The notes beneath the pieces are model-generated. The model saw nothing but the letters and a program-made list of their open reading frames with translations, did no database searches and was not told where the DNA came from. Shown here piece after piece: positions 1 through 55,418 of a stretch of 64,000 nucleotides of DNA. Within the stretch, counting starts at the first letter, position 1; every line of letters starts with the position of its first letter. The translations under genes and the position numbers were made by a program. Location: the NCBI GenBank assembly GCA_950097015.1, contig CATNEN010000037.1, positions 4,030,001 to 4,094,000 of the forward strand. Reading direction: 5' to 3'. Origin of the DNA: Macrostomum hystrix. Taxonomy: Eukaryota > Animalia > Platyhelminthes.

Positions 1-479
1 TAATTAATTTCGAATTTTAACTACAGAGGAGGCAATTCTCTCTACAATCCAATGATCCGTGAACCCTGTAAAAAATTCGGCTGCTTCTTCGGCGGGTTTT
101 TTGTGCAAAATAGGAGTGGAATCTACCGAAATCCCCCCTATCTCGCAAGAGTTAAAGAAACCACCCAGGAAGCAGCCGATGTAACCGTAAATTGTGCGGA
201 AACCGCCGAAGAATCACCCGAAGACGTGGCCCATGGGAAAACCAGAGAATTATTTACGGGCGATTCCTCGGCGGTTTCTGAGCATGGAATCTTCCGAACT
301 GGAGGATTCTTTGGGTGATTCCATTTCGCCACCAAGAAGCACCGAGAAAACGCCCAGTTGGGTAGATTCTAATCATGGAATCATCCGATTGGTATGTTTC
401 CTGTGTTGGGATTTAAATAGCGGATCTCTCTGGGGAAATATTTATTTGCAGGAATAAAAAATGTTTGCATTCTGCTTAC

Positions 480-18579: not shown

Positions 18580-21500
18580 ATGATACAAGCTGAACAACAG
18601 AAACAAAAGGTCTTAAAAACAGCCTCCAATTTGGAGACTCCGGTTGTCAACTCGGCGATCAGCATGCCGACTCAAAGTCCTAAATCGAACACTAACCCTA
18701 ACCCTAACCCTAACCCTAGCCCTAACCCTAGCCCAAACCCTAACCATAATACTAATCCTAATCCCATCACTATGCCTGTGCCAAATCCACAATTCAAGTC
18801 AGCCCAAGTCGACAGCGTTGGCGTCGGCGCTGACCTCGCGCACACCTTCCGTCTATTCGCTGGCAGCACCACGGCGCACGGGTTCCGGCACTTGAACCAC
18901 CCGATCCGGGCTGCGCAAGCCGCTTGGCTGGCCCTCATCGTCGCTGCTTTCATCGCCTTCACCGTCCACCTGTCGCTGCTGGCTGTGAAATTTCGTGAAC
19001 AACCGATCAGCACAAAGATCAGCCCGAAGGGGAGCCACTACGAGCCGCCTGACATTACCGTCTGCAACCGGATGATGTTCGCCATCAGCCGCGTCTTCAA
19101 CGGCTCCTCTGGCAACGGCAGCAGCGACGGTAGCGGCATGGAAATCAGTAGCAGATTCAGGTAAAACTTTCTGCTGCCGATCTGACAATCTGCAGGCGAA
19201 GGATTAAGTCACTGTAATCCAAGTGACCCGGATTGAGAATCCGAATGACCCGGATTGAGAATCCGAATGACCCGGATTGAGAATCCGAATGATCTGGATT
19301 GAGTATCGAAATGATCTAGATTGAGAATCCGAATGACCCGGATTGAGAATCCAAATGATCTACATTAAGAATCCAAATGATCTAGATTGAGAATCCAAAT
19401 GATCTGGATTGAGAATCCAAATGATCTAGATTGAGAATCCGAATGATCTAGATTGAGAATCCGAATGATCTAGATTGAGAATCCAAATGATCTGGATTGA
19501 GAATCCAAATGATCTGGATTGAGAATCCAAATGATCTGGATTGAGAATCCAAATGATCTAGATTGAGAATCCGAATGATCTAGATTGAGAATCCGAATGA
19601 TCTGGATTGAGAATCCAAATGATCTAGATTGAGAATCCGAATGATCTGGATTGAGAATCCGAATGATCTAGATTGAGAATCCAAATGATCTGGATTGAGA
19701 ATTCGAATGACCTAGATTGAGAATCCAAGTGATCCGGATTGAGAATCCGAATGACCCATATTGAGAATCCGAATGATCTAGATTGAGAATCCGAATGATC
19801 TAGATTGAGAATCCGAATGATCTAGATTGAGAATCCAAAAAATCTGGATTGAGAATTCGAATGACCCAGATTGAGAATCCAAGTGATCCGGATTGAGAAT
19901 CCCAATGATCTAGATTGAGAATCCGAATGATCTAGATTGAGAATCCGAATGATCTAGATTGAGAATTCGAATGACCCAGATTGAGAATCCAAGTGATCCG
20001 GATTGAGAATCCGAATGCCCGGATTGAGAATCCAAGTGATCCGGATTGAGAATTCGAATGACCCAGATTGAGAATCCAAGTGATCCGGATTGAGAATTCG
20101 AATGACCCAGATTGAGAATCCAAGTGATCCGGATTGAGAATCCAAGTGATCCGGATTGAGAATCCAAGTGATCCGGATTGAGAATCCAAGTGATCCGGAT
20201 TGAGAATCCGAATGACCCGGATTGAGAATCCAAGTGATCCGGATTGAGAATCCGAATGCCCGGATTGAGAATCCAAGTGATCCATATTGAGAATCCGAAT
20301 GACCCATATTGAGAATCCAAGTGATCCGGATTGAGAATCCGAATGATCTGGATTGAGAATCGAAATGATCTGGATTGAGAATCCGAATGACCCGGATTGA
20401 GAACCCAAATGATCTAGATTGAGAATCCAAATGATCTAGATTGAGAATCCAAATGATCCGGATTGAGAATCCGAATGACCCATATTGAGAATCCAAGTGA
20501 TCCGGATTGAGAATCCGAATGATCTGGATTGAGAATCGAAATGATCTGGATTGAGAATCCGAATGACCCGGATTGAGAACCCAAATGATCTGGATTGAGA
20601 ATCCAAGTGATCCGGATTGAGAATCCGAATGACCCATATTGAGAATCCAAGTGATCCGGATTGAGAATCCGAATGACCCAGATTGAGAATCCAAGTGATC
20701 CGGATTAAGAATCCAAATGATCTAGATTGAGAATCCAAATGATCTAGATTGAGAATCCAATTGATCTAGATTGAGAATCCGAATGATCTAGATTGAGAAT
20801 CCGAATGATCTAGATTGAGAATCCGAATGATCTGGATTGAGAATCCAAATGATCTGGATTGAGAATCCAAATTATCTGGATTGAGAATCCGAATGATCTA
20901 GATTGAGAATCCGAATGATCTAGATTGAGAATCCAAATGATCTAGATTGAGAATCCAATTGATCTAGATTGAGAATCCGAATGATCTAGATTGAGAATCC
21001 GAATGACACGGATTGAGAATCCAAGTGATCCGGATTGAGAATTCGAATGACCCAGATTGAGAATCCAAGTGATCCGGATTGAGAATCCGAATGACCCATA
21101 TTGAGAATCCAAGTGATCCGGATTGAGAATCCAAATGATCCGGATTGAGAATTCGAATGACCCAGATTGAGAATCCAAGTGATCCGGATTGAGAATCCGA
21201 ATGATCTGGATTGAGAATCGAAATGATCTGGATTGTGAATCCGAATGACCCGGATTGAGAATCCAAATGATCTACATTAAGAATCCAAATGATCTTGATT
21301 GAGAATCCGAATGATCTAGATTGAGAATCCGAATGATCTGGATTGAGAATCCAAATGATCTAGATTGAGAATCCGAATGATCTGGATTGAGAATCCGAAT
21401 GATCTAGATTGAGAATCCAAATGATCTGGATTGAGAATTCGAATGACCTAGATTGAGAATCCAAGTGATCCGGATTGAGAATCCGAATGATCTGGATTGA

Positions 21501-24500
21501 GAATCCGAATGATCTAGATTGAGAATCCGAATGATCTAGATTGAGAATCCGAATGACCCAGATTGAGAATCCAAGTGATCCGGATTGAGAATTCGAATGT
21601 CCCAGATTGAGAATCCAAGTGATCCGGATTGAGAATCCAAGTGATCCGGATTGAGAATCCAAGTGATCCGGATTGAGAATCCAAGTGATCCGGATTGAGA
21701 ATCCGAATGACCCGGATTGAGAATCCAAGTGATCCGAATTGAGAATCTGAATGACCCATATTGAGAATCCAAGTGATCCGGATTGAGAATCCGAATGCCC
21801 GGATTGAGAATCCAAGTGATCCATATTGAGAATCCGAATGACCCATATTGAGAATCCAAGTGATCCGGATTGAGAATCCGAATGATCTGGATTGAGAATC
21901 GAAATGATCTGGATTGAGAATCCGAATGACCCGGATTGAGAACCCAAATGATCTAGATTGAGAATCCAAATGATCTAGATTGAGAATCCAAATGATCCGG
22001 ATTGAGAATCCAAGTGATCCGGATTGAGAATCCGAATGACCCAGATTGAGAATCCAAGTGATCCGGATTGAGAATCCGAATGACCCAGATTGAGAATCCA
22101 AGTGATCCGGATTGAGAATCCGAATGATCTAGATTGAGAATCCAAGTGATCCGGATTGAGAATCCAAATGATCTAGATTGAGAATCCAAATGATCCGGAT
22201 TGAGAATTCGAATGATCCGGATTGAGAATCCAAGTGATCCGGATTGAGAATCCGAATGACCCGGATTGAGAATCCAAGTGATCCGAATTGAGAATCCGAA
22301 TGACCCATATTGAGAATCCAAGTGATCCGGATTGAGAATCCGAATGCCCGGATTGAGAATCCGAATGACCCATATTGAGAATCCAAGTGATCCGGATTGA
22401 GAATCCGAATGACCCATATTGAGAATCCAAGTGATCCGGATTAAGAATCCAAATGATCTAGATTGAGAATCCAAATGATCTAGATTGAGAATCCAATTGA
22501 TCTAGATTGAGAATCCGAATGATCTAGATTGAGAATCCGAATGATCTAGATTGAGAATCCGAATGATCTGGATTGAGAATCCAAATGATCTGGATTGAGA
22601 ATCCAAATTCTCTGGATTGAGAATCCGAATGATCTAGATTGAGAATCCGAATGATCTAGATTGAGAATCCAAATGATCTAGATTGAGAATCCAATTGATC
22701 TAGATTGAGAATCCGAATGATCTAGATTGAGAATCCGAATGACACGGATTGAGAATCCAAGTGATCCGGATAGAGAATTCGAATGACCCATATTGAGAAT
22801 CCAAGTGATCCGGATTGAGAATCCAAATGATCCGGATTGAGAATTCGAATGACCCAGATTGAGAATCCAAGTGATCCGGATTGAGAATCCGAATGATCTG
22901 GATTGAGAATTGAAATGATCTGGATTGTGAATCCGAATGACCCGGATTGAGAACCCAAATGATCTGGATTGAGAATCCGAATGACCCGGATTGAGAATCC
23001 AAATGATCTACATTAAGAATCCAAATGATCTTGATTGAGAATCCAAGTGATCCGGATTGAGAATCCGAATGACCCGGATTGAGAATCCAAGTGATCCGGA
23101 TTGAGAATCCGAATGATCTGGATTGAGTATCGAAATGATCTAGATTGAGAATCCGAATGACCCGGATTGAGAATCCAAATGATCTACATTAAGAATCCAA
23201 ATGATCTAGATTGAGAATCCAATTGATCTAGATTGAGAATCCGAATGATCTAGATTGAGAATCCGAATGACACGGATTGAGAATCCAAGTGATCCGGATT
23301 GAGAATTCGAATGACCCAGATTGAGAATCCAAGTGATCCGGATTGAGAATCCGAATGACCCATATTGAGAATCCAAGTGATCCGGATTGAGAATCCAAAT
23401 GATCCGGATTGAGAATTCGAATGACCCAGATTGAGAATCCAAGTGATCCGGATTGAGAATCCGAATGATCTGGATTGAGAATCGAAATGATCTGGATTGT
23501 GAATCCGAATGACCCGGATTGAGAATCCAAATGATCTACATTAAGAATCCAAATGATCTTGATTGAGAATCCGAATGATCTAGATTGAGAATCCGAATGA
23601 TCTGGATTGAGAATCCAAATGATCTAGATTGAGAATCCGAATGATCTGGATTGAGAATCCGAATGATCTAGATTGAGAATCCAAATGATCTGGATTGAGA
23701 ATTCGAATGACCTAGATTGAGAATCCAAGTGATCCGGATTGAGAATCCGAATGATCTGGATTGAGAATCCGAATGATCTAGATTGAGAATCCGAATGATC
23801 TAGATTGAGAATCCGAATGATCTAGATTGAGAATCCAAATGATCTGGATTGAGAATTCGAATGACCCAGATTGAGAATCCAAGTGATCCGGATTGAGAAT
23901 CCGAATGATCTAGATTGAGAATCCGAATGATCTAGATTGAGAATCCGAATGATCTAGATTGAGAATTCGAATGACCCAGATTGAGAATCCAAGTGATCCG
24001 GATTGAGAATCCGAATGCCCGGATTGAGAATCCAAGTGATCCGGATTGAGAATTCGAATGACCCAGATTGAGAATCCAAGTGATCCGGATTGAGAATTCG
24101 AATGTCCCAGATTGAGAATCCAAGTGATCCGGATTGAGAATCCAAGTGATCCGGATTGAGAATCCAAGTGATCCGGATTGAGAATCCAAGTGATCCGGAT
24201 TGAGAATCCGAATGACCCGGATTGAGAATCCAAGTGATCCGAATTGAGAATCTGAATGACCCATATTGAGAATCCAAGTGATCCGGATTGAGAATCCGAA
24301 TGCCCGGATTGAGAATCCAAGTGATCCATATTGAGAATCCGAATGACCCATATTGAGAATCCAAGTGATCCGGATTGAGAATCCGAATGATCTGGATTGA
24401 GAATCGAAATGATCTGGATTGAGAATCCGAATGACCCGGATTGAGAACCCAAATGATCTAGATTGAGAATCCAAATGATCTAGATTGAGAATCCAAATGA

Positions 24501-27500
24501 TCCGGATTGAGAATCCAAGTGATCCGGATTGAGAATCCGAATGACCCAGATTGAGAATCCAAGTGATCCGGATTGAGAATCCGAATGACCCAGATTGAGA
24601 ATCCAAGTGATCCGGATTGAGAATCCGAATGATCTAGATTGAGAATCCAAGTGATCCGGATTGAGAATCCAAATGATCTAGATTGAGAATCCAAATGATC
24701 CGGATTGAGAATTCGAATGATCCGGATTGAGAATCCAAGTGATCCGGATTGAGAATCCGAATGACCCGGATTGAGAATCCAAGTGATCCGAATTGAGAAT
24801 CCGAATGACCCATATTGAGAATCCAAGTGATCCGGATTGAGAATCCGAATGCCCGGATTGAGAATCCGAATGACCCATATTGAGAATCCAAGTGATCCGG
24901 ATTGAGAATCCGAATGACCCATATTGAGAATCCAAGTGATCCGGATTAAGAATCCAAATGATCTAGATTGAGAATCCAAATGATCTAGATTGAGAATCCA
25001 ATTGATCTAGATTGAGAATCCGAATGATCTAGATTGAGAATCCGAATGATCTAGATTGAGAATCCGAATGATCTGGATTGAGAATCCAAATGATCTGGAT
25101 TGAGAATCCAAATTCTCTGGATTGAGAATCCGAATGATCTAGATTGAGAATCCGAATGATCTAGATTGAGAATCCAAATGATCTAGATTGAGAATCCAAT
25201 TGATCTAGATTGAGAATCCGAATGATCTAGATTGAGAATCCGAATGACACGGATTGAGAATCCAAGTGATCCGGATAGAGAATTCGAATGACCCAGATTG
25301 AGAATCCAAGTGATCCGGATTGAGAATCCGAATGACCCATATTGAGAATCCAAGTGATCCGGATTGAGAATCCAAATGATCCGGATTGAGAATTCGAATG
25401 ACGCAGATTGAGAATCCAAGTGATCCGGATTGAGAATCCGAATGATCTGGATTGAGAATTGAAATGATCTGGATTGTGAATCCGAATGACCCGGATTGAG
25501 AACCCAAATGATCTGGATTGAGAATCCGAATGACCCGGATTGAGAATCCAAATGATCTACATTAAGAATCCAAATGATCTTGATTGAGAATCCAAGTGAT
25601 CCGGATTGAGAATCCGAATGACCCGGATTGAGAATCCAAGTGATCCGGATTGAGAATCCGAATGATCTGGATTGAGTATCGAAATGATCTAGATTGAGAA
25701 TCCGAATGACCCGGATTGAGAATCCAAATGATCTACATTAAGAATCCAAATGATCTAGATTGAGAATCCAATTGATCTAGATTGAGAATCCGAATGATCT
25801 AGATTGAGAATCCGAATGACACGGATTGAGAATCCAAGTGATCCGGATTGAGAATTCGAATGACCCAGATTGAGAATCCAAGTGATCCGGATTGAGAATC
25901 CGAATGACCCATATTGAGAATCCAAGTGATCCGGATTGAGAATCCAAATGATCCGGATTGAGAATTCGAATGACCCAGATTGAGAATCCAAGTGATCCGG
26001 ATTGAGAATCCGAATGATCTGGATTGAGAATCGAAATGATCTGGATTGTGAATCCGAATGACCCGGATTGAGAATCCAAATGATCTACATTAAGAATCCA
26101 AATGATCTTGATTGAGAATCCGAATGATCTAGATTGAGAATCCGAATGATCTGGATTGAGAATCCAAATGATCTAGATTGAGAATCCGAATGATCTGGAT
26201 TGAGAATCCGAATGATCTAGATTGAGAATCCAAATGATCTGGATTGAGAATTCGAATGACCTAGATTGAGAATCCAAGTGATCCGGATTGAGAATCCGAA
26301 TGATCTGGATTGAGAATCCGAATGATCTAGATTGAGAATCCGAATGATCTAGATTGAGAATCCGAATGATCTAGATTGAGAATCCAAATGATCTGGATTG
26401 AGAATTCGAATGACCCAGATTGAGAATCCAAGTGATCCGGATTGAGAATCCGAATGATCTAGATTGAGAATCCGAATGATCTAGATTGAGAATCCGAATG
26501 ATCTAGATTGAGAATTCGAATGACCCAGATTGAGAATCCAAGTGATCCGGATTGAGAATCCGAATGCCCGGATTGAGAATCCAAGTGATCCGGATTGAGA
26601 ATTTGAATGACCCAGATTGAGAATCCAAGTGATCCGGATTGAGAATTCGAATGTCCCAGATTGAGAATCCAAGTGATCCGGATTGAGAATCCAAGTGATC
26701 CGGATTGAGAATCCAAGTGATCCGGATTGAGAATCCAAGTGATCCGGATTGAGAATCCGAATGACCCGGATTGAGAATCCAAGTGATCCGAATTGAGAAT
26801 CTGAATGACCCATATTGAGAATCCAAGTGATCCGGATTGAGAATCCGAATGCCCGGATTGAGAATCCAAGTGATCCATATTGAGAATCCGAATGACCCAT
26901 ATTGAGAATCCAAGTGATCCGGATTGAGAATCCGAATGATCTGGATTGAGAATCGAAATGATCTGGATTGAGAATCCGAATGACCCGGATTGAGAACCCA
27001 AATGATCTAGATTGAGAATCTAAATGATCTAGATTGAGAATCCAAATGATCCGGATTGAGAATCCAAGTGATCCGGATTGAGAATCCGAATGACCCAGAT
27101 TGAGAATCCAAGTGATCCGGATTGAGAATCCGAATGACCCAGATTGAGAATCCAAGTGATCCGGATTGAGAATCCGAATGATCTAGATTGAGAATCCAAG
27201 TGATCCGGATTGAGAATCCAAATGATCTAGATTGAGAATCCAAATGATCCGGATTGAGAATTCGAATGATCCGGATTGAGAATCCAAGTGATCCGGATTG
27301 AGAATCCGAATGACCCGGATTGAGAATCCAAGTGATCCGAATTGAGAATCCGAATGACCCATATTGAGAATCCAAGTGATCCGGATTGAGAATCCGAATG
27401 CCCGGATTGAGAATCCGAATGACCCATATTGAGAATCCAAGTGATCCGGATTGAGAATCCGAATGACCCATATTGAGAATCCAAGTGATCCGGATTAAGA

Positions 27501-30500
27501 ATCCAAATGATCTAGATTGAGAATCCAAATGATCTAGATTGAGAATCCAATTGATCTAGATTGAGAATCCGAATGATCTAGATTGAGAATCCGAATGATC
27601 TAGATTGAGAATCCGAATGATCTGGATTGAGAATCCAAATGATCTGGATTGAGAATCCAAATTCTCTGGATTGAGAATCCGAATGATCTAGATTGAGAAT
27701 CCGAATGATCTAGATTGAGAATCCAAATGATCTAGATTGAGAATCCAATTGATCTAGATTGAGAATCCGAATGATCTAGATTGAGAATCCGAATGACACG
27801 GATTGAGAATCCAAGTGATCCGGATAGAGAATTCGAATGACCCAGATTGAGAATCCAAGTGATCCGGATTGAGAATCCGAATGACCCATATTGAGAATCC
27901 AAGTGATCCGGATTGAGAATCCAAATGATCCGGATTGAGAATTCGAATGACCCAGATTGAGAATCCAAGTGATCCGGATTGAGAATCCGAATGATCTGGA
28001 TTGAGAATTGAAATGATCTGGATTGTGAATCCGAATGACCCGGATTGAGAACCCAAATGATCTGGATTGAGAATCCGAATGACCCGGATTGAGAATCCAA
28101 ATGATCTACATTAAGAATCCAAATGATCTTGATTGAGAATCCAAGTGATCCGGATTGAGAATCCGAATGACCCGGATTGAGAATCCAAGTGATCCGGATT
28201 GAGAATCCGAATGATCTGGATTGAGTATCGAAATGATCTAGATTGAGAATCCGAATGACCCGGATTGAGAATCCAAATGATCTACATTAAGAATCCAAAT
28301 GATCTAGATTGAGAATCCAAATGATCTGGATTGAGAATCCAAATGATCTAGATTGAGAATCCGAATGATCTAGATTGAGAATCCGAATGATCTAGATTGA
28401 GAATCCAAATGATCTGGATTGAGAATCCAAATGATCTGGATTGAGAATCCAAATGATCTGGATTGAGAATCCAAATGATCTAGATTGAGAATCCGAATGA
28501 TCTAGATTGAGAATCCGAATGATCTGGATTGAGAATCCAAATGATCTAGATTGAGAATCCAAATGATCTGGATTGAGAATTCGAATGACCTAGATTGAGA
28601 ATCCAAATGATCTGGATTGAGAATTCGAATGACCTAGATTGAGAATCCAAGTGATCCGGATTGAGAATCCGAATGACCCATATTGAGAATCCGAATGATC
28701 TAGATTGAGAATCCGAATGATCTAGATTGAGAATCCGAATGATCTAGATTGAGAATCCAAATGATCTGGATTGAGAATTCGAATGACCCAGATTGAGAAT
28801 CCAAGTGATCCGGATTGAGAATCCGAATGATCTAGATTGAGAATCCGAATGATCTAGATTGAGAATCCGAATGATCTAGATTGAGAATTCGAATGACCCA
28901 GATTGAGAATCCAAGTGATCCGGATTGAGAATCCGAATGCCCGGATTGAGAATCCAAGTGATCCGGATTGAGAATTCGAATGACCCAGATTGAGAATCCA
29001 AGTGATCCGGATTGAGAATTCGAATGACCCAGATTGAGAATCCAAGTGATCCGGATTGAGAATCCAAGTGATCCGGATTGAGAATCCAAGTGATCCGGAT
29101 TGAGAATCCAAGTGATCCGGATTGAGAATCCGAATGACCCGGATTGAGAATCCAAGTGATCCGAATTGAGAATCCGAATGACCCATATTGAGAATCCAAG
29201 TGATCCGGATTGAGAATCCGAATGATCTGGATTGAGAATCGAAATGATCTGGATTGAGAATCCGAATGACCCGGATTGAGAACCCAAATGATCTAGATTG
29301 AGAATCCAAATGATCTAGATTGAGAATCCAAATGATCCGGATTGAGAATCCGAATGACCCATATTGAGAATCCAAGTGATCCGGATTGAGAATCCGAATG
29401 ATCTGGATTGAGAATCCGAATGACCCGGATTGAGAACCCAAATGATCTGGATTGAGAATCCAAGTGATCCGGATTGAGAATTCGAATGACCCATATTGAG
29501 AATCCAAGTGATCCGGATTGAGAATCCGAATGACCCAGATTGAGAATCCAAGTGATCCGGATTGAGAATCCGAATGATCTAGATTGAGAATCCAAGTGAT
29601 CCGGATTGAGAATCCAAATGATCTAGATTGAGAATCCAAATGATCCGGATTGAGAATTCGAATGATCCGGATTGAGAATCCAAGTGATCCGGATTGAGAA
29701 TCCGAATGACCCGGATTGAGAATCCAAGTGATCCGAATTGAGAATCCGAATGACCCATATTGAGAATCCAAGTGATCCGGATTGAGAATCCGAATGCCCG
29801 GATTGAGAATCCGAATGACCCATATTGAGAATCCAAGTGATCCGGATTGAGAATCCGAATGACCCATATTGAGAATCCAAGTGATCCGGATTAAGAATCC
29901 AAATGATCTAGATTGAGAATCCAAATGATCTAGATTGAGAATGCAATTGATCTAGATTGAGAATCCGAATGATCTAGATTGAGAATCCGAATGATCTGGA
30001 TTGAGAATCCAAATGATCTGGATTGAGAATCCAAATGATCTAGATTGAGAATCCGAATGATCTGGATTGAGAATCCAAATGATCTAGATTGAGAATCCAA
30101 ATGATCTAGATTGAGAATCCGAATGATCTAGATTGAGAATCCGAATGATCTGGATTGAGAATCCAAATGATCTGGATTGAGAATCCAAATTATCTGGATT
30201 GAGAATCCGAATGATCTAGATTGAGAATCCGAATGATCTAGATTGAGAATCCAAATGATCTAGATTGAGAATCCAATTGATCTAGATTGAGAATCCGAAT
30301 GATCTAGATTGATAATCCGAATGACACGGATTGAGAATCCAAGCGATCCGGATTGAGAATTCGAATGACCCAGATTGAGAATCCAAGTGATCCGGATTGA
30401 GAATCCGAATGACCCATATTGAGAATCCAAGTGATCCGGATTGAGAATCCAAATGATCCGGATTGAGAATTCGAATGACCCAGATTGAGAATCCAAGTGA

Positions 30501-33500
30501 TCCGGATTGAGAATCCGAATGATCTGGATTGAGAATCGAAATGATCTGGATTGTGAATCCGAATGACCCGGATTGAGAACCCAAATGATCTGGATTGAGA
30601 ATCCGAATGACCCGGATTGAGAATCCAAATGATCTACATTAAGAATCCAAATGATCTTGATTGAGAATCCAAGTGATCCGGATTGAGAATCCGAATGACC
30701 CGGATTGAGAATCCAAGTGATCCGGATTGAGAATCCGAATGACCCGGATTGAGAATCCAAGTGATCCGGATTGAGAATCCGAATGACCCATATTGAGAAT
30801 CCAAGTGATCCGGATTGAGAATCCGAATGCCCGGATTGAGAATCCAAGTGATCCGGATTGAGAATCCGAATGACCCATATTGAGAAAATAAGTGATCCGG
30901 ATTGAGAATCCGAATGACCCATATTGAGAATCCAAGTGATCCGGATTGAGAATCCGAATGCCCGGATTGAGAATCCAAGTGATCCGGATTGAGAATCCGA
31001 ATGACCCGGATTGAGAATCCAAGTGATCCGGATTGAGAATCCGAATGCCCGGATTGAGAATCCAAGTGATCCGGATTGAGAATCCGAATGACCCATATTG
31101 AGAATCCAAGTGATCCGGATTGAGAATCCAAGTGATCCGGATTGAGAATCCGAATGCCCGGATTGAGAATCCAAGTGATCCGGATTGAGAATCCGAATGC
31201 CCGGATTGAGAATCCAAGTGATCCGGATTGAGAATCCGAAAGACCCATATTGAGAATCCAAGTGATCCGGATTGAGAATCCGAATGACCCAGATTGAGTA
31301 TCTAAAACCTGTGTTAATAGGTCACGTGCAATATGGCACCTATATAATATAGAATATAGGAGCCATATTGTCGATCTGAAATTTTTTTAAAGTATTTTTG
31401 ATGCCAAATCGCTAACTGGAGCATCGCATTAGAGAGCATCATAATTATTTTATTGATTCTGCCCCGTCTTAGCTCGTATTTTCGCTAGTGGGCGGTGAAA
31501 GTACAATCGGAGGCAGCCGGATTTTTTCGTCAAATTGGTGATTTACGCTCGTAACTCTTTTTTTAAAACGCGCGACACAATGAAGCTTTGTATGCTGAAG
31601 GGAAGTGATAAAATGCGTTTTCTACCTGCCATCAGTGCTCACTATTGCACTTTTCATGTTTGAATTCATGCATTACTCGCTATATTAATAATGCTACTGC
31701 AGGAGTAACAATGGCGGCATTCATCTCAGACATTTACGGGTTACCATTCCTGGCGGGTTCTAACCCTTGCTGGCGGGTTCTAGCCCTTGCTGGCGAGTTC
31801 TAACCCTTGCTGGCGGGTTCTAACCCTTGCTGGCGGGTTCTAATCCTTGCTGGCGGGTTCTAATCCTTGCTGGCGGGTTCTAACCCTTGCTGGCGGGTTC
31901 TAGCCCTTGCTGGCGAGTTCTAACCCTTGCTGGCGGGTTCTAACCCTTGCTGGCGGGTTCTAATCCTTGCTGGCGGGTTCTAATCCTTGCTGGCGGGTTC
32001 TAGCCCTTGCTGGCGGGTTCTAATCCTTGCTGGCGGGTTCTAGCCCTTGCTGGCGGGTTCTAATCCTTGCTGGCGGGTTCTAGCCCTTGCTGGCGGGTTC
32101 TAATCCTTGCTGGCGGGTTCTAGCCCTTGCTGGCGGGTTCTAATCCTTGCTGGCGGGTTCTAATCCTTGCTGGCGGGTTCTAATCCTTGCTGGCGGGTTC
32201 TAGCCCTTGCTGGCGGGTTCTAACCCTTGCTGGCGGGTTCTAGCCCTTGCTGGCGGGTTCTAATCCTTGCTGGCGGGTTCTAGCCCTTGCTGGCGGGTTC
32301 TAATCCTTGCTGGCGGGTTCTAACCATTGCTGGCTGGTTCTAATCCTTGCTGGCGGGTTCTAACCATTGCTGGCGGGTTCTAACCCTTACTGTCGGATCT
32401 TATCTTCTCAGGTGGCTCTTACCTTTCTCAGAGGGGCTCTTACCCTTCTTAGGTGGCTCTTACCCTTCTGAGGGGGCTCCTACCCTTCTTAGGGGGCTCT
32501 TACTCTTCTTAGGGGGCTCTTACCCTTCTCAGGGGGCTCCTACCCTTCTCAGGGGGCTCTTACCCTTCTCAGGGGGCTCTTACCCTTCTCAGGGGGCTCT
32601 TACCCTTCTCAGGGGGCTCTTACCCTTCTCAGGGGGCTCTTACCCTTCTCAGGGGGCTCTTACCCTTCTCAGGGGCTCTTACCCTTCTCAGGGGGCTCTT
32701 ACCCTTCTCAGGGGGCTCTTACCCTTCTCAGGGGGCTCCTACCCTTCTCAGGGGGCTCTTACCCTTCTCAGGGGGCTCTTACCCTTCTCAGGGGGCTCTT
32801 ACCCTTCTCAGGGGGCTCTTACCCTTCTCAGGGGGCTCTTACCCTTCTCAGGGGGCTCTTACCCTTCTCAGGGGGCTCTTACCCTTCTCAGGGGGTTCTT
32901 ACCCTTCTTAGGTAGCTCTTACTCTTAATTACAGCTTTTGAACCAGCTGACGAGGCTTTACTCCCTCTCTATTATTTCTGTGCTTTCTTAAATTTCCGTC
33001 TAATTTCAACAATTGCACTCGTGTACCACCCTACGAACCAGGCCAGTGTACGACAGTGTTCAGCAGGTGCGTCAGATTCTCAATCTTAACGTTCGGCGCT
33101 ACCTGCGCGACAGGTACGGCGACTATGAGCATGACACGGACACTCTGCGGGCTGAGGATGATGGAATCTACAATCTGCCCAGTGAGTACCATTGCTTGGC
33201 TACTGTTTACGTTCAGTGTTGCTGTGCGATTTCACTCCGACTGTCACTCCACCATTTCACTCTGACTGTCCCCTCCGTCATTTCACCCCGACTGTCATTC
33301 CGCCATTTCACCCCGACTGTCATTCCACCATTTCACTCCGACTGTCACTCCACCATTTCACTCCGACTGTCACTCCACCATTTCACTCTGACTGTCACTC
33401 CACCATTTCACTCCGACTGTCACTCCACCATTTCACTCCGACTGTCACTCCACTATTTCACTCCGACTGTCACTCCGGCATTTCTCTCCGACTGTCACTC

Positions 33501-35679
33501 CACCATTTCACTCCGACTGTCACTCCACCATGGCAGACCTGGTGATCCGGGACACCTATGGCATCAGGATGCTGGCTCAGTTCAGCGCCAGCCCCAGCGC
33601 CATGCTGCTGTGGTGCGCATTCGGTACGCTCGCCTGCGACCAGGCCGACTTCCAGCCAGTCGCCCTGCCCGCTAGCCCGGCCTGCATGACCTTCAGCCTC
33701 GACAGATTCCGGTCCAGACGGCCCAACATCACCGTCAACGAGCTGAATGAGCTGCGCCTCGTTCTGTTCACCGACTCATTCAACAGCGACCCCGGCGTCA
33801 TCGCTGGCCTTGCCAACTTGCCTGGCGACTGGTTCAACATGCAGACAACTGGCGGCGCCGTGGCCTACGTGCACCCCAGGGGCACCTACCCCACGCATGG
33901 CAACCGAATCGAGGCTAGCAACGGGGAAGAGACCATTGTGGATATCCGGTACCAATTAAACTCCTCTAAAATAATCATGATAATACCTTGTAAGGGGCTT
34001 CGGGCTCTGGTACATCATCGGGTGACGCATAGGCCACGCACACGCACACATACTGTACACATGTACAACACACAGGTGTGTACATCTGCCCCACACCATT
34101 TTTTATTGAGAAAGTGGCCTCATAAAAGTGGCCTCATGAAAGTGGCCTCACCGCGGAATCGAGCTCGGGGACCTTGGTGCTAGAGGCAAACGTGTGTTAA
34201 CCGCTTTGCCACTCACTCCAACTGAGCAATGTTTGTACACACGTGCGTACTTGGGAACGTGATTTATGTGACATAATTTCCTTCAAAGTCTCTCGAACAC
34301 CTTTTTTGATCGAATAAGTTCAGCAGGTGAAGCACATTCTCTAATTATGGTTCGGCCATAGACAAAAAGGTTTGGTTACGGCCATAGACAGAAGGGCTAT
34401 GGCAGTCGTCAATGGGCGTTTTCCAAAGTACGCTCGTACATTGATTGTACTTGGATGTGTGAATTTTGAAAAGCATTTAGCAGTGTTAGTGGTTAGAGCA
34501 CAAATCAATGAACTCAATATTCCGCAGGTATCAGGCGTTCGACGCTAAAAGTACACAGAGTGCGCCATGCCTGGACGACGCCAGTCACCGGAAGCTGCAG
34601 TACCTGGTGATTGCTAATCGCCAATTGGTGCCAGCAACTTTTGAGGTTTGTATAAAATGATCTAAAAAATCAATTCTGAAGCCTTGCTAAAAAAGTCAGC
34701 TACGAAAACTCGCATGTTGCTCGGTTAGCTGACCATGGTGAGGAAGTAACACCCAGTGCAATATCCTGAGCACGAGCTCAGGTTGAACTTGAGCACAGTG
34801 CTCATGCAATTCTTCTTTAGTGAAGTAAATCGAAGGTGATAAATCAAGCAGAAATTGCATTCACAGGCCCACCTGTACGATTGTCACGTGACAGTGTCCC
34901 AGGACGTATTGCTGCGCCGTTGCGGCTTCATCGATCCGAGCCTGCCGCTGCCAGCTGACCTCGCCGGCAAGCCGAGGCGCGGCAACCTCAGCAACCTTCT
35001 ACCAGCGTCTGGCGGGGAAAATCTGACCCCAGCCCAACTGATCGACTCCGTGTTCATCCAGGCAGTCAACAGCTCAAACGACGGCGGCATGCCGGGCATG
35101 ATCCGTCGCCTGCTTGAGAACGAGTCCTGCCTGCGGCTAGCCCAGGTGGCCGCGGCGGCAGATTCGCGAATAGACGCCTGTCTGGACTTCTGCCGAGGCG
35201 GCATCTACAGCACCGGCTTCATGGCAGCCGCTTGGCCAGTGGCGGACGCGGCCTTCCTGCAGCCGCTGGTTCGGCGCTGGCTGGGGTCCAACGCCTACTT
35301 CCTGAACGGCTCCTCCAGGACCAACCAGTCTATAAACGAGGCCTTCATCCACTCGGCCAGCTGGAATCTGCTGCGGGCCTACAAGTCGCTGCCCGACAAG
35401 GCGCTTGGCGAGTCTCTAAAAAATTTTCTAGCTCTCCGATTTCGTCCGGCTGACTCGCAGGGCCTCGGAGCGCTGACGGAGGAGAACTGGGCCTACCAGC
35501 TGCATGACCTGGCCTCCGATGTTGGCGGCATACTCGGCCTGTACATGGGCGTCAGCGTGCTGACCCTGTGCGAGCTGCTGGAGCTGCTGGGCCGCATGGC
35601 TGGCATTGCTTCTCGGGGCAGGCGGGCCGCAGCTCCAGGTGTTGCTGCTGCTTCCGCGTTGCGAACCACCAGTGTGTGA
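18580..35679 (+). CDS. DEG/ENaC-family amiloride-sensitive sodium channel subunit. Exons 18580 (or ATG 18664/18772)-19160, 33042-33181, 33537-33948, 34528-34645 (or 34606), 34867-35679
   Basis: Pre-TM1 HG motif FAGSTTAHG; TM1 AWLALIVAAFIAFTVHL; post-TM1 PDITVCN; WCAFGTLAC...DF; CMTF; AYVHP; thumb Cys; AAAWP; TM2 YQLHDLASDVGGILGLYMGVSVLTLCELLE (GxS filter). Junction phases 2, 1, 2, 0 match. Confidence 0.92.
18692..18765 (+). repeat. Degenerate (CCCTAA)n telomere-like tract at the 5' end of the DEG/ENaC ORF, read as (PN)n
   Basis: CTAACCCTAACCCTAACCCTAACCCTAGCCCTAACCCTAGCCCAAACCCTAACC... seen directly. Confidence 0.85.
19216..31302. repeat. ~12.1-kb satellite of a 22-bp monomer (GATTGAGAATCCGAATGATCTA and variants, occasional 21-bp units), ~550 copies, in DEG/ENaC intron 1
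   Basis: Direct tandem repetition; higher-order period of 2549 bp from rare-variant markers. Confidence 0.99.
31750..32388. repeat. 20-bp minisatellite (TGCTGGCGGGTTCTAACCCT), ~32 copies
   Basis: Direct tandem repetition. Confidence 0.97.
32398..32925. repeat. 20-bp minisatellite (CTTACCCTTCTCAGGGGGCT), ~26 copies
   Basis: Direct tandem repetition, starting ~10 bp after the previous array. Confidence 0.97.
33225..33530. repeat. 25-bp minisatellite (ACTCCGACTGTCACTCCACCATTTC), ~12 copies, filling DEG/ENaC intron 2
   Basis: Direct tandem repetition ending 6 nt before the acceptor AG at 33535-33536. Confidence 0.95.
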
Positions 35680-37906: not shown

Positions 37907-38224
37907 TTAGCCGTAGCGCATTCGGCTGCCCGTGGCGTAGGCGGCCTTGCCGCGCTCCTCGCTGTGATATCCGGGGTGCTGGAAGGACAGTGACGAGGCC
38001 AGCAGGAAGCCGCGGTAGGGCCGCTCGAATCGGCGATAGCGGAGCAGTTGTGAGCAGAGCGCCGCTAGGCGAGGGCTACTGGCCCGCCGCTCAGGTGAGC
38101 ACAGGCCCATCGCAGCCGCAGCAATGGCAGCTTCGTCCGACCAGACATCCGGCTCGGCTAGAGCTAAGGCTACGAAGCCCATGACGGCGCATAGCAACAG
38201 CATGGCAACCGTACTGTATTGCAT
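37907..38224 (-). CDS. Neuropeptide precursor (105 aa): signal peptide, two-Cys pro-region, C-terminal ...AAYATGSRMRY-Gly-stop (RY-amide)
   Basis: Leader MQYSTVAMLLLCAVMGFVALALA; C-x14-C motif (LCSPERRASSPRLAALC); RR and R/K processing sites; the terminal Gly sits immediately before TAA. GC-rich coding-like composition in AT-rich flanks; TTCTCAG acceptor at 38299 upstream. Confidence 0.8.
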   Translation of the reverse strand: MQYSTVAMLLLCAVMGFVALALAEPDVWSDEAAIAAAAMGLCSPERRASSPRLAALCSQLLRYRRFERPYRGFLLASSLSFQHPGYHSEERGKAAYATGSRMRYG

Positions 38225-38924
38225 GTTTTGGTTGCTATGTGAGGTTAGCGAACTTTCAAATTTACTAAGCTGTCAAAGATTGGAACTGATGAATGCGGCT
38301 GAGAACAGCTAGTCACCTTTGTGAGTGCACCTCGACATGGATTTTTGGGGCCGTATTATATCCGCCGCCAAGGTCCATAGATGGTGCGTTGGCTTGGGGC
38401 GGCTTTGAGCCAGAGACAGCTCCGACTGTTCTGATTGGCTGCGGAACAGGCCGTGGGCGATCGCTGGTAAGCCTTGTGCAATTCTTGTCAGATATTGTCA
38501 GATTTGCTGATTAGGAGGATTTTCATTCATCAACAGCGCGTGCTAAAACTGGCTCTAAGTTTGCTCTTAGAGTAACAAAAATTGAATTTCACTCCCCTAT
38601 TAAAATGCACGTAGTAAAATCCCATCTTGAATTTTAATCTGGATTTAATGAAGCCGGTTGAAAAGCTACCTGACAAGATTTCTTTGCTCAGAAACTTGGA
38701 GAACGCAGAAATGAGAGCCTGCGTAGATTCATCAGAGCTGGGAAGTGAATGCATCAGAGACGACTGAATGCGCATTTGCGAATGCTCAAACATCTTTGAG
38801 CACATTCCGTACATTAGACTCTGAATCGACAATTAGCCACAAAATAGTACGTGGTAGAAAGTAAATGCAGAAGAATAAAAAAAGATAATACGAGGTTGCA
38901 TTTCTAACTTTTAGGATAGTACTT

Positions 38925-47569: not shown

Positions 47570-49263
47570 ATGTCTGAACCGCCTGGCGCAGTCGAATGCG
47601 CCCTCGCGGTGCCCCTGATGGTGGCGGTGATCCTGCTGACGGTGATCGGCAACGCCCTGGTGATTCTGGCGGTGTTCACTTCAAGAGCTCTGCGCCAGGC
47701 TCAGAACTTTCTCATCGTCAGCCTGGCCTGCGCTGACATGGCTGTCGGCCTGCTAGTCCAGCCGTTGCAGGTCAAGACCTTCCTGACCGACGATGCGTGG
47801 CTACTGCCCCGGCTGGTGTGCACCGTATTCACAATGTCCGACATATTCTTCTGCACTGCCAGCATACTCAACCTGGCCGCCATCGCTGTGGACCGCTATT
47901 GCGCAATCAAATACCCGATACCCTACGCCAACAAAAGAACAACTGGCACCGTCTTGATGATGATTGGCGCCGCCTTCGGGCTTAGCGGAGCCATCAGCTT
48001 CGGGCCGCTGATCAGCTGGACTGGCGTCGGAGGCTCCGCCTTGGCGAACAACAGCAGCGGGCAGGTGTGCGAGCTGCCTAGTGCCAGCGGTTACATTGTG
48101 TTCAGCGCTTTGGGCAGCTTCTACCTGCCCGCAGCTGTCATTGCCGGCCTGTACATCAGCATCTACCTGGCGCTGAGGCGGCGACTGCGGCGGCGAGCGG
48201 CCGCCTCGGCGGTGAGCAAGTTTTCCCAGGTCACCGCCATGGCAACGCCTCCGCAACGGCAGCGGGTGAGTTTAGGTTGGAGTGAGTTTAGGTTGGGGTG
48301 AGTTTAGGTTGGAGTGTGAGTTTAGGCTGGAGTGAGTTTAGGCTGGGGTGAGTTTAGGCTGGGGTGAGTTTAGGTTGGAGTGAGTTTAGGTTGGGGTGAG
48401 TTTAGGTTGGAGTGTGAGTTTAGGCTGGGGTGAGTTTAGGCTGGGGTGAGTTTAGGTTGGAGTGAGTTTAGGTTGGGGTGAGTTTAGGCTGGGGTGAGTT
48501 TAGGTTGGGGTGAGTTTAGGTTGGGGTGAGTTTAGGCTGGGGTGAGTTTAGGTTGGAGTGAGTTTAGGTTGGGGTGAGTTTAGGCTGGGGTGAGGTTAGG
48601 CTGGGGTGAGTTTAGGCTGGGGTGAGTTTAGGTTGGAGTGAGTTTAGGTTGGGGTGAGTTTAGGTTGGAGTGTGAGTTTAGGCTGGGGTGAGTTTAGGCT
48701 GGGGTGAGTTTAGGCTGGGGTGAGTTTAGGCTGGGGTGAGTTTAGGTTGGAGTGAGTTTAGGCTGGGGTGAGTTTAGGCTGGGGTGAGTTTAGGTTGGAG
48801 TGAGTTTAGGCTGGGGTGAGTTTAGGTTGGGGTGAATATAGGTGTGAGTGAATTTAGGCTGGGGTTAGTGTGGGTTCTGCCGAGTTATGCCTAGTATTTC
48901 CATTTTCAGTTCAGGCCAGTAGTGAGTTTCGGTCGCTAGGGAGTGCACTGAGACGCAAGGCAGTGATTATTTCAATATTTGTTCAGATCCAAATGAGAGC
49001 CTGCAGCGGGGGATATGTAATCCATGTAGCCTCAGTAGGAAAGATACAGAAATGTTGATATATAACTTTTCTTCATTTACTTCCTCGCATCCGGCAAAAG
49101 AAGTATAGTTTTTATTTCCCCGGCTCCCTTGGGGAAGCTCTCATCGACTGACAAACTGGGGATCTGAAGGCTGAGTCCTGGGATCAGTGAGATCAAATCA
49201 TTGCCAGACTTGCAGGAGCACTATCTGTCTATCCATCTATCTGTCTATCTATCTATCTATCTG

Positions 49264-52300: not shown

Positions 52301-55300
52301 CCTATTACCTCTCCATAAACCCTAGTACCTCTAGTCCATATATAAGTTAAAGAGTTGAAAGTTACTTGGCTAACCAAAAATGTCAAATGATTCTTCAAGC
52401 AATTATTATGAAGAATGAGGTGTCAATCCGGTGGATTATTCAGACCTCAACCTTTGCTGGAAGTCACAGAGCTGGTGCTCAACGCACGGCTCACCCTGAA
52501 CCTTATCATTCTAAATAATAATTTCGATTTAATGCCGAACGAACTAATCCGTATATTTTTTTCCTACTGAATTGAGCAATTGAACTTTGCAAGCTTGTTT
52601 GTTGTTAGGTTGCAAATTCTTGACAAAATAAGATTAACAAATCGCTTCCTAGCCAGCGGACTAGCATGAGCCAGCTAGCGGATTAGCGGGAATAGCGGGA
52701 TTAGCCGTTCATGATCGGCGCGGATCAGCCGGCAAATCCTCGACGCCGCCAGACACGGGCTCGGCATCCGTTGACAGGTTTTTGACAGATCGCTGGCCGG
52801 GCTCAGGAAGGGAGGGGGTGGCTGTCCGCCGGGCAACAAGCCGTATCTTTGCTTTCTTTTCAATCTGGCCGGTTAGTGAAGCGCTTCGATCAGGGCTTCG
52901 TGCCCGGTCGGCTCGTTAACCAGATGGATTGGCCGCTGGTTCGAAGTTAATTGGTGCGGCTAGCGAGTAAAAGGGGGAGTGTGTTTTTATCCCCTGAATT
53001 ACGAGTTGAGCTCACCTCATATATCCTAGCTATACTCAGGCGAACTCAGTGCATACAGCTCGTACATGTGCTATAGTCTCGCTAGAGCTTACTTTACTTT
53101 TGTCATGTTCAAGTCCTGAGCTCAGTAGACCGCGTCTGATGAGCTGCGTGCTCGAGCCGCCAAAGGGATGGGTTAGAGACAGGATGGGTTGTGGCACAGG
53201 CCCGTCTCCGGGTCAGCTATTGATCCAGCTCCCTAGACAACCAAGGAGCTTAAAAAAAGGCTGGCTAGGCCAGGTAAAAACTGCTTTAAATACTCGTAGC
53301 AAGAAACCGATACTGGTGCTGTAAATGTGGAAAGACAACGCTATTTTTAAAGACCAGACTACTTCACGCTAGCTCCCAAACCGAATGACCGATTTTCGTG
53401 AAAGTCCACCATAAGGATCACAGTTTTCCACCCTTTACGATGAACTAACTTTCAAAGCAGTCCGACGTCAGCATCATTGAGACTTTTTTGCGATTCTTGA
53501 CAAAGACACTCGCGACAAGGACAACTAACATTGCTCTGGATAAACCCCATGGCGAATCCCTATTGGCTAAAAAGTATTCTAATTAAGAATATAATCAATA
53601 CGGTATAATCAACAATAATAGCCGACATGGTTCCAGGATGAAATTTGGTGAGCAAAAACCGACAACCAAACGAAAATCGTTGAATATCTCGACGATGCCG
53701 ATGTTCTGTGATTCTGGAAGTTGTTTCATCGGATCGAGCAGAGAATTTTCGCCGGCGTTCTGGATTTTTATTGCGATAGGTTAAATATTTTAGGAGTTAT
53801 AGAAAAAAAACAAAAATCTGGGTATTCGAAATACCCCAGTGGTCCTTCTACTGCTGCAGTGCTTGAACTTGGCATTAGGACACGATGGTAGTACAACCCA
53901 GCTGTGTTTCTGAATCTTATATCGCTTGAAATCTGTGTTTTCGTCACAAGTTTTTCAAACTTTTAAACTTTTGAACTTGAATACGATTTCGCAATTATAA
54001 TATTCTACAAGTGTGTTTTGTGCACCACGAAGAACAAAACATACTTGCACATAAAGTCACAGCACAGAACATCACAGCACAGAACGTCACCGTACAGAAG
54101 GTCACAGTACGAACGACACAGTACGAACGTCACAGTACAGAACGTCACAGTAGAGAACGTCACAGTACAGAACGTCACAGTACAGAACGTCACAGTGCAG
54201 AACGTCACAGTACAGAACGTCACAGTACAGAACGTCACAGTACAGAACGTCACAGTACAGAACGTCACAGTGCAGAACGTCACAGTGCAGAACGTCACAG
54301 TACAGAACGTCACAGTACAGAACGTCACAGTACAGAACGTCACAGTACAGAACGTCACAGTACAGAACGTCACAGTACAGAACGTCACAGTACAGAACGT
54401 CACAGTACAGAACGTCACAGTACAGAAATCACCGTACAGAAGGTCATAGCTTATAACATCACAGCACAGAACGTCACAATGCAGAACGTCGCAGTACAGA
54501 ACGTCACAGTAGAGAACATCACAGATCAGAAACGGCACAGCTCAGAACGTCATAGAACAGAACGGCGCAGCTCAGAACGTAACAGTGCAGAAGATTCTAT
54601 TGCTTCTTCCAGGTCAAAGTTCGGGCAGTATATTACTTTACAGAATTACAGCACATACGTCTAAAAGTGAAACAGTAATATAATAAGAATCGATTAAGAA
54701 AAGTCTTAAAAGTTCCCATCACAATCCGATCATCCCACAGTCGATACCGAAAAGCAGTGAAGCTGACCCCGACGAAGAAGATGCCGAAGCGGATGACGAC
54801 GAAGAGGACAGCACTCGGCGGCAGCCGCCAACCAATGAGACAGCAATGTGCGACGACAATGATTCCTGCGTGGCTGAGCAGGAGACAACTGGCTCGCTGG
54901 CTGTAGTCAGCGGCTGCAGCAATGGCACCGCACCAGAGAGACAGCCTGGCCACCACCAGCAGCAGCTGCAGGTCCGTCTGCAGCTACCCCAGCCGCGTCG
55001 ACAGCCGCGCCTCGCCGCCAAGCTGCTGTCACCAGTCAGGCCAGCTCATCAGCTAGCCCAGCCACCAGCCTCGTCTGCTTGCACTTCAGTTCACGAGCAC
55101 TCGCGCAATAGGCAGAAGATCTCGCTGAGTAGGGAGCGGAGAGCGCTGCGCACTCTGGGAATAATCATGGGCATTTTCATTCTCTGCTGGCTGCCCTTCT
55201 TCCTGGTCTACCTGGCTGGAGCCTGGGGCTTCGCGCCCGAAAAGCGCCTCTTTCGCCTGTTCGTGTGGCTCGGCTACGTGAACTCGGCGCTGAATCCGGT

Positions 55301-55418
55301 CATCTACACCGTGTTCAATGCCGACTTCAGGCGCGCCTTCGCTCGCCTGCTGCACATCAGCGACTCGGCTGACACAGCTGGAGATGCGGTGCGCTGCTGC
55401 CTGCCCTGCCAGCGCTGA
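47570..55418 (+). CDS. Class A biogenic-amine GPCR, octopamine/tyramine-receptor-like. Exons 47570-48265 and 54741-55418
   Basis: GNALV (TM1); [11 protein letters not shown]...VQP (TM2); TM3 Asp in [21 protein letters not shown]; TM5 [13 protein letters not shown]; TM6 [24 protein letters not shown]; TM7 [15 protein letters not shown] phase-0 intron lies in ICL3 (CGG|GTGAGT...CCACAG|TCG). Confidence 0.95.
48266..48868 (+). repeat. 16-bp G-rich minisatellite (GTGAGTTTAGG[T/C]TGG[A/G]), ~36 copies, starting exactly at the GPCR donor site
   Basis: Direct; the first unit is the intron's first 16 nt. Confidence 0.97.
49226..49283. repeat. (ATCT)n microsatellite
   Basis: Direct. Confidence 0.9.
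50172..50442. repeat. ~38-bp repeat (TTCATTTCTCTCCCCCAGCCAATTATCGATCCGAGACC), ~6 copies in two groups separated by a C-rich spacer
   Basis: Direct imperfect tandem repetition. Confidence 0.85.
51525..52332. repeat. 20-bp minisatellite (CTCCATAAACCCTAGTAGCT and variants), ~40 copies
   Basis: Direct tandem repetition. Confidence 0.97.
53345..53851 (-). mobile_element. Second, diverged copy of the 10244-10783 dispersed element, in the GPCR intron
   Basis: Shared colinear blocks: CTACTTCACG, AGCTCCCAAACCGAATGAC, CCCTTTACGATGAACTA, GATGAAATTT, AATCGTTGAATATCT, TGTGATTCT.GAAGTTGTTTCA, GTGGTC..TCTAC. Confidence 0.75.
54055..54590. repeat. 15-bp minisatellite (CAGTACAGAACGTCA)
   Basis: Direct tandem repetition, ending ~150 nt before the GPCR exon 2 acceptor. 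Confidence 0.95.

Follow-up and report, generated by a model that had tools for sequence, protein, structure and literature searches.

NKY, which has been called a paralogue of NPY, occurs in nemerteans, molluscs and annelids, and there is a report of NKY1 from a polyclad flatworm. Its precursors consist of a signal peptide, a propeptide, a dibasic site and one C-terminal peptide of about 35–43 residues, which ends with [FLM]RYG followed by zero to three basic residues (Thiel et al. 2021 supplement, PMC8557429). NKY-1 ends with P-[FM]-R-Y-G and NKY-2 with K-L-M-R-Y-G, the stop following directly after the latter in one nemertean (Thiel 2021, PMC8557429). The cores of the peptides are FW[RQ]P[LM]G[YG] in NKY-1 and G[YF]WIWMPAQG in NKY-2. 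An N-terminal lysine is diagnostic of the NKY peptide (De Oliveira 2019), although several nemertean NKY peptides lack it and mass spectrometry shows one that starts with T-G-F-W (Thiel 2021, PMC8557429).

A hallmark of NPY/NPF genes is a phase-2 intron inside the codon of the penultimate arginine. The mature peptide of myosuppressin is a decapeptide of the type x-D-V-x-H-x-F-L-R-F-amide. Myosuppressin is ecdysozoan and has the myomodulins as its spiralian counterparts (Thiel et al. 2021, PMC8557429). Flatworms possess many orphan receptors of the NPY/sNPF group, and it is still a matter of debate which receptor the long NKY peptides truly act on.

The window analysed here, a 64-kb stretch of Macrostomum hystrix DNA, contains on its minus strand an open-reading frame of 105 residues (positions 37907..38224 of the window) with an ATG start and a single exon. 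It rather probably represents a true gene, free of introns, that encodes a small secreted prohormone and would yield a single 39-residue RY-amide in an NKY-like layout. All features of the gene described below lie on the minus strand. As an earlier note on this DNA had claimed, the frame closes with R-M-R-Y-G and a stop, which can be read both in the list of open frames and in the sequence; the stop codon is TAA (37907..37909) and lies directly 3' of the Gly105 codon. The start codon (38222..38224) has an A at −3 (caaaacATGc), and the open frame of 121 codons holds no in-frame ATG upstream of this start. A CCAAT box (agCCAATcag, 38434..38438), a consensus match of putative function, is found 210 nt upstream of the ATG, and a TATA-like box, TATAATA (38354..38360), 130–136 nt upstream of it. 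The TATA-like box is the downstream one of the two, and their spacing of 74 nt would be typical of a Pol II core promoter.

The signal peptide is predicted to comprise residues 1–23 (38156..38224), with cleavage expected after Ala21 or Ala23. The call was made by a heuristic of our own, under which a signal peptide must have a core that is hydrophobic and free of charge, with small residues at −3 and −1. The hydrophobic N-terminus passes it, in agreement with the earlier note: the Kyte-Doolittle mean reaches 2.83 in the best stretch of 12 residues, the core carries no charge, the residues at −3 and −1 are small and an A-L-A motif precedes Glu24. Among 4000 simulated open frames with the same dinucleotide make-up, 0.55% have such a signal-like start.

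The propeptide (residues 24–63, 38036..38155) contains two cysteines, Cys42 (38099-38101), which is preceded by Leu41, and Cys57 (38054-38056), with 14 residues between them. The loop holds an R-R pair at residues 46–47 (38084-38089), and both cysteines and this pair are invariant in comparison with the sister gene described below. The loop R-R may be a second cleavage site, giving two disulfide-linked chains, or a structural feature. Further along, the loop contains P51-R52 and ends with L56-C57. The LC-x14-C arrangement proposed earlier is therefore present as described, while the accompanying PR..LC pattern has to be corrected, as three residues and not two separate P-R from L-C.

The dibasic site R64-R65 (38030..38035) stands in the context R-Y-R-R and is matched by K-R at the corresponding place of the sister gene. 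The predicted mature peptide, residues 66–104 (39 residues, 37913..38029), starts with Phe66, ends with S-R-M-R-Y and includes the motif LLASSLSFQ (37979-38005), which is shared with the sister gene. Its net charge is +3, Gly, Ser and Pro are abundant in it, and it has no amphipathic helix. The residue after it, Gly105 (37910..37912), is the putative amide donor, as known prohormone chemistry would suggest.

We infer that the gene is expressed and that its product is processed in the following way. The signal peptide of approximately 23 residues would be removed first, a prohormone convertase would cut after R64-R65, and Gly105 would be converted to a C-terminal amide. The product would be one 39-residue peptide ending with G-S-R-M-R-Y-amide, the propeptide with its two cysteines being left over, and this 39-mer may act as a ligand of a GPCR in the NPY/sNPF receptor group. 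Its predicted monoisotopic mass in the amidated form is 4521.230. The R-Y-R-R context fits the usual convertase rule, which Lys93, the other site considered below, does not. The genome encodes copper monooxygenase domains and convertase P-domains, but some enzymes of both domain families have other roles, so that the presence of a processing toolkit is plausible and no more. Of the readings considered, the best is still the one first given for the locus, a single-exon precursor with a signal peptide and one amidatable peptide at the extreme C-terminus, and to see in it a hidden prohormone for an amidated RY-amide is probably correct.

The AlphaFold model of the precursor is of low confidence (pLDDT 55) and shows helices only at the signal peptide (residues 5–23), on both sides of the Cys loop and at residues 68–79. 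Such a model would fit an unfolded prohormone but hardly anything beyond that, and carries no weight either way.

The coding character of the frame is visible in its composition. Its GC content is 64.5% against 48–49% in the flanks, so that it forms a GC island, and the GC fractions at codon positions 1, 2 and 3 (0.66, 0.55 and 0.74) follow the pattern of the securely identified genes of the window. These are SF3B1, a rhodopsin-type receptor, a DEG/ENaC channel and a two-pore potassium channel, and 2242 of their codons were used to train a codon model. With this model the frame scores +15 bits with the stop excluded (+12.3 with the stop), compared with −31 to −38 for the five other frames. Open frames simulated with an equal dinucleotide composition score −20 ± 10, and not one among 3000 comes up to the observed value (z 3.6). 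The sister gene has a z of 4.0.

The two ends of the precursor are similarly uncommon. An R[FY]G ending was found in 0.025% of the 4000 simulated open frames, and a signal-like start together with such an ending is expected by chance at about 1e-6 per open frame. The window contains about 26 non-repetitive ATG-started frames of at least 80 residues per 64 kb, which by a rough extrapolation to the 220-Mb genome gives a chance expectation of roughly 0.1 frames with both such a start and such an ending. Only one other of the 26 has a signal-like start, and this is the first membrane helix of a receptor. The 1.4 kb around the frame is single-copy DNA in the genome, which argues against a mobile element, and an Rfam scan of the locus gave no match to an RNA family.

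The sister gene (G000:C37:2728383-2728724, or L005:2384-2725, minus strand) lies 1.3 Mb upstream on the same contig and encodes 114 residues from its ATG. Its parts follow the same order: a signal peptide, a Cys pair, a K-R site, a 38-residue peptide, R-Y-G and a stop. The two cysteines are 13 residues apart, and their loop contains R-R-R, with R-R at the matching place. The 38-residue peptide starts with Met, carries L-L-S-S-Q-L-S-Y-Q where the window gene has L-L-A-S-S-L-S-F-Q, and ends with I-V-R-Y before the glycine and the stop; the motif common to both mature peptides is LLxSxLS[FY]Q. Its predicted monoisotopic mass in the amidated form is 4280.087. Both genes are placed in short unique islands between minisatellite arrays, those on the two sides of the sister gene having units of 22 and 35 bp, and the unique islands that carry such short intronless prohormone genes measure approximately 0.8–2.3 kb.

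The two proteins are linked by BLASTP at E 0.015 only. The signal peptide and the final R-Y-G are the features by which the pair had been picked, and both were removed before the local similarity was assessed; 218 of 20000 shuffles were then as good (p ~0.011). The mature peptides alone are matched in similarity by 126 of 10000 shuffles. In a global alignment over the full length the pair scores 46, against −24 ± 12 in codon-shuffled controls, and none of 1000 controls reached 46. The nucleotide identity at codon positions 1, 2 and 3 is 0.54, 0.54 and 0.35, as compared with 0.41, 0.45 and 0.33 in the controls. The identity is thus raised at positions 1 and 2 only, which indicates that the likeness is at the level of the protein and that silent sites are saturated. 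Judged by this pattern, the two genes appear to be old duplicates kept under protein-level constraint, and nothing else speaks as strongly for a true coding status of both.

Searches of the genome with either protein, with a profile of the two genes and with a DNA pattern of the shared motif brought up no further member. The DNA pattern also hit other places, in numbers close to those of the control, and these are AT-rich matches due to chance. The two genes would accordingly make up a two-member family, detected in this genome only.

Neither protein matched a Pfam family, that of the window gene not even at E 10. Word searches with both sister genes found no relative, and a full HMMER search against 1.84 billion representatives gave no true match at E 0.001 or better; its only hit, P0001, is a translated tandem repeat and was rejected as a relative. 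No counterpart in another species, including other Macrostomum, was found in the word and HMMER searches. Exact-sequence look-ups among transcripts and contigs returned no record, in a collection that may leave out the records of this genome. For a fast-evolving precursor of 105 residues it is estimated that a counterpart scoring below about 40 bits would be missed at the size of the HMMER database, and the blank therefore means that no close relative is on record rather than that counterparts are absent.

In a language-model comparison, almost all look-alikes of both genes are small neuropeptide precursors. Those of the window gene score 0.85–0.90, while those of the sister gene include myosuppressin, DH31, NPS, NMU, NPFF, gastrin, kisspeptin and PDH. 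They read as a likeness to small one-peptide prohormones in general and not as kinship.

By layout, peptide length and ending, NKY would be the closest known kind, as judged against the nemertean, phoronid and brachiopod precursors in the Thiel 2021 supplement. The order of the parts is the same, with one long peptide at the extreme C-terminus after a dibasic site, here of 39 residues. The hydrophobic-R-Y-Gly ending is also the same, here as M-R-Y-G and then the stop, and so is a Gly/Ser-rich stretch ahead of it, with which the Gly/Ser run of the sister gene lines up by eye. The NKY cores find a partial likeness, by eye only, in F-E-R-P-Y-R-G and F-L-L-A-S-S-L-S-F of the window gene and in M-W-L-L-S-S-Q of the sister gene. 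In an unscored comparison by eye, aromatic-L-L-x-S-S-x-S-aromatic resembles the W-L-W-V-P-S-Q-G-Y of NKY-2 and F-E-R-P-Y-R-G recalls the FW[RQ]P[LM]G of NKY-1.

The pair differs from NKY in several respects. The N-terminal lysine is absent, with Phe66 as the first residue here and Met in the sister gene, and the core consensus is not clearly kept. The propeptide is short (40 residues) and holds a Cys pair, which the NKY precursors compared do not have. The full HMMER and word searches gave no link in sequence similarity to NKY. A true descent of the family from NKY, suggested by the comparison by eye, is possible, with the balance leaning against it. A more specific proposal, that the two genes are a flatworm branch of the NKY-2 lineage which diverged past detection by searches and gained a disulfide-looped propeptide, is tentative and rather unlikely. 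If it were true, some of the many orphan NPY/sNPF-like receptors that flatworms possess would have the 38–39-residue RY-amides as their natural ligands, and the pair would bear on the question of which receptor NKY peptides really use.

Other readings of the locus can be weighed against a prohormone with one long RY-amide. The one nearest to it keeps the gene and changes the product: cleavage after Lys93 would, as the earlier note correctly stated, give an 11-mer that ends with T-G-S-R-M-R-Y (predicted monoisotopic mass 1244.608 when amidated) and that might act as a peptide of the sNPF/LFRF-amide type. The last six residues, G-S-R-M-R-Y, do resemble spiralian sNPF/LFRF-amide or 'RYa' peptides, the form G-S-x-hydrophobic-R-[YF]-amide being common to GSLMRY-amide of Platynereis, GSVFRY-amide of planarians and GSLFRF-amide of the oyster, and nemertean NKY is also cut at single basic residues (Thiel 2021, PMC8557429). 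Lys93, however, has neither a basic residue at position −4 or −6 nor a dibasic pair ahead of it, and precursors of the sNPF type hold several copies of 5–10 residues between dibasic sites, whereas here a single copy ends a long conserved peptide. The LLxSxLS[FY]Q motif lies upstream of Lys93, within the long peptide, and points to the long form as the unit under selection. Of the two products proposed earlier, the 39-mer is better supported because in the sister gene the dibasic site and the motif inside a long peptide are preserved and Lys93 is not; the 11-mer is a possible secondary cut, and unlikely to be what the gene is for. It is similarly improbable that the frame arose by chance or belongs to a dead or never-expressed gene. 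The shortness of the frame, the lack of a relative in databases and the very large amount of sequence scanned would be expected of a chance frame, but the codon usage of both genes, the rarity of the joint start and ending, the collinear sister gene conserved at codon positions 1 and 2 only and the CCAAT and TATA-like boxes upstream all speak for a gene. The product could also be secreted and amidated and yet have a task outside neural signalling, for example as a gland product, a defence peptide or a reproductive peptide. Secreted effector peptides are often lineage-restricted and fast-evolving, as this family appears to be, and the net charge of +3 would suit such a role; on the other hand, the R-x-R-Y-amide ending is typical of ligands of the NPY/RF-amide receptor group, the 39-mer is without an amphipathic helix and the look-alikes are neuropeptide precursors, so that this reading is decidedly improbable.

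The two family assignments that the earlier note had offered fare worse. A divergent gene of the NPY/NPF type would explain a 39-residue peptide with an R-x-R-Y-amide ending (36–40 residues and R-x-R-[FY]-amide in the family), and the genome does contain a very large NPF family. However, the 28 genomic matches of the Hormone_3 profile (PF00159), of which at least 19 exceed its cut-off, include none on contig C37 and neither of the two genes, and the protein of the window gene does not match the profile even at E 10. The peptide does not follow the signal peptide directly, being separated from it by the 40-residue propeptide, and it ends with Gly and the stop instead of G-K-R and a C-flanking peptide. 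The codons of R-M-R-Y-G and the stop are contiguous, without an intron in that of the penultimate Arg, and the Gly/Ser/Pro-rich peptide shows no Tyr-spaced helix. Membership in NPY/NPF is very unlikely on these grounds, yet the phrase then used, an NPY/F-like peptide in an atypical position, comes close to NKY, a family absent from that first reading. A flatworm member of the myosuppressin family can hardly be credited at all. The layout agrees with that of arthropod myosuppressin, a small precursor with one C-terminal peptide and cysteines in the propeptide, and two myosuppressin clusters stand at 0.91 among the look-alikes of the sister gene, a score in the range that serves for leads only. 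Against it, the peptide differs in sequence and length: no HVFLRF-like decapeptide occurs anywhere in the 105 residues, and the product backed by the sister gene is 38–39 residues long. The full HMMER search found no arthropod precursor, the spiralian counterparts are myomodulins (PMC8557429) and planarians have myomodulin-like genes.

With an RY-amide prohormone as the preferred reading, the unannotated-looking gene pair provides two candidate long RY-amide ligands with predicted masses in a laboratory flatworm genus. It also suggests that short intronless prohormone genes in unique islands between minisatellite arrays are easily missed by gene finders. The advance is a modest one, since molecules of this class are well known, and what is new is an apparently lineage-restricted pair with the standing of a candidate.

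Two NKY-like genes of the same genome, L027 (G000:C25:6548955) and L031 (G000:C39:18799992), were considered as members of the family and rejected, as they show no similarity to it (p 0.23-0.9), a result that also counts against NKY kinship. Both are split genes, the last exon of which ends with G-F-K-P-L-R-G-K-R after Q-F-G-S. The upstream exon of L031 holds a signal peptide and a K-R site ahead of a GT donor. Among the NPY/NPF genes of the genome, several Hormone_3 matches fall in one open frame or a few kb apart, for example at C34:3167768-3172910, which indicates multi-unit or clustered NPF genes.

The window also holds an SF3B1 gene (381-4459, minus strand), in which a single open frame of 946 codons accounts for most of the protein, and a 24-bp minisatellite (3300-4246) lies between this frame and the apparent N-terminal exon (~4290-4459). 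The DEG/ENaC channel gene, with an ASC domain (18580-35679, plus strand), has its exons split by a 12-kb satellite with a 22-bp unit (19216-31306), and the end of its last exon is separated by 2.2 kb from the prohormone gene, to which the channel gene stands tail to tail. The rhodopsin-family receptor is encoded on the plus strand by two exons (47570-48301 and 54846-55418), the intron between them being filled by minisatellites, and by eye it has the look of an amine receptor, with an Asp in helix 3, a DRY motif and NPxxY.
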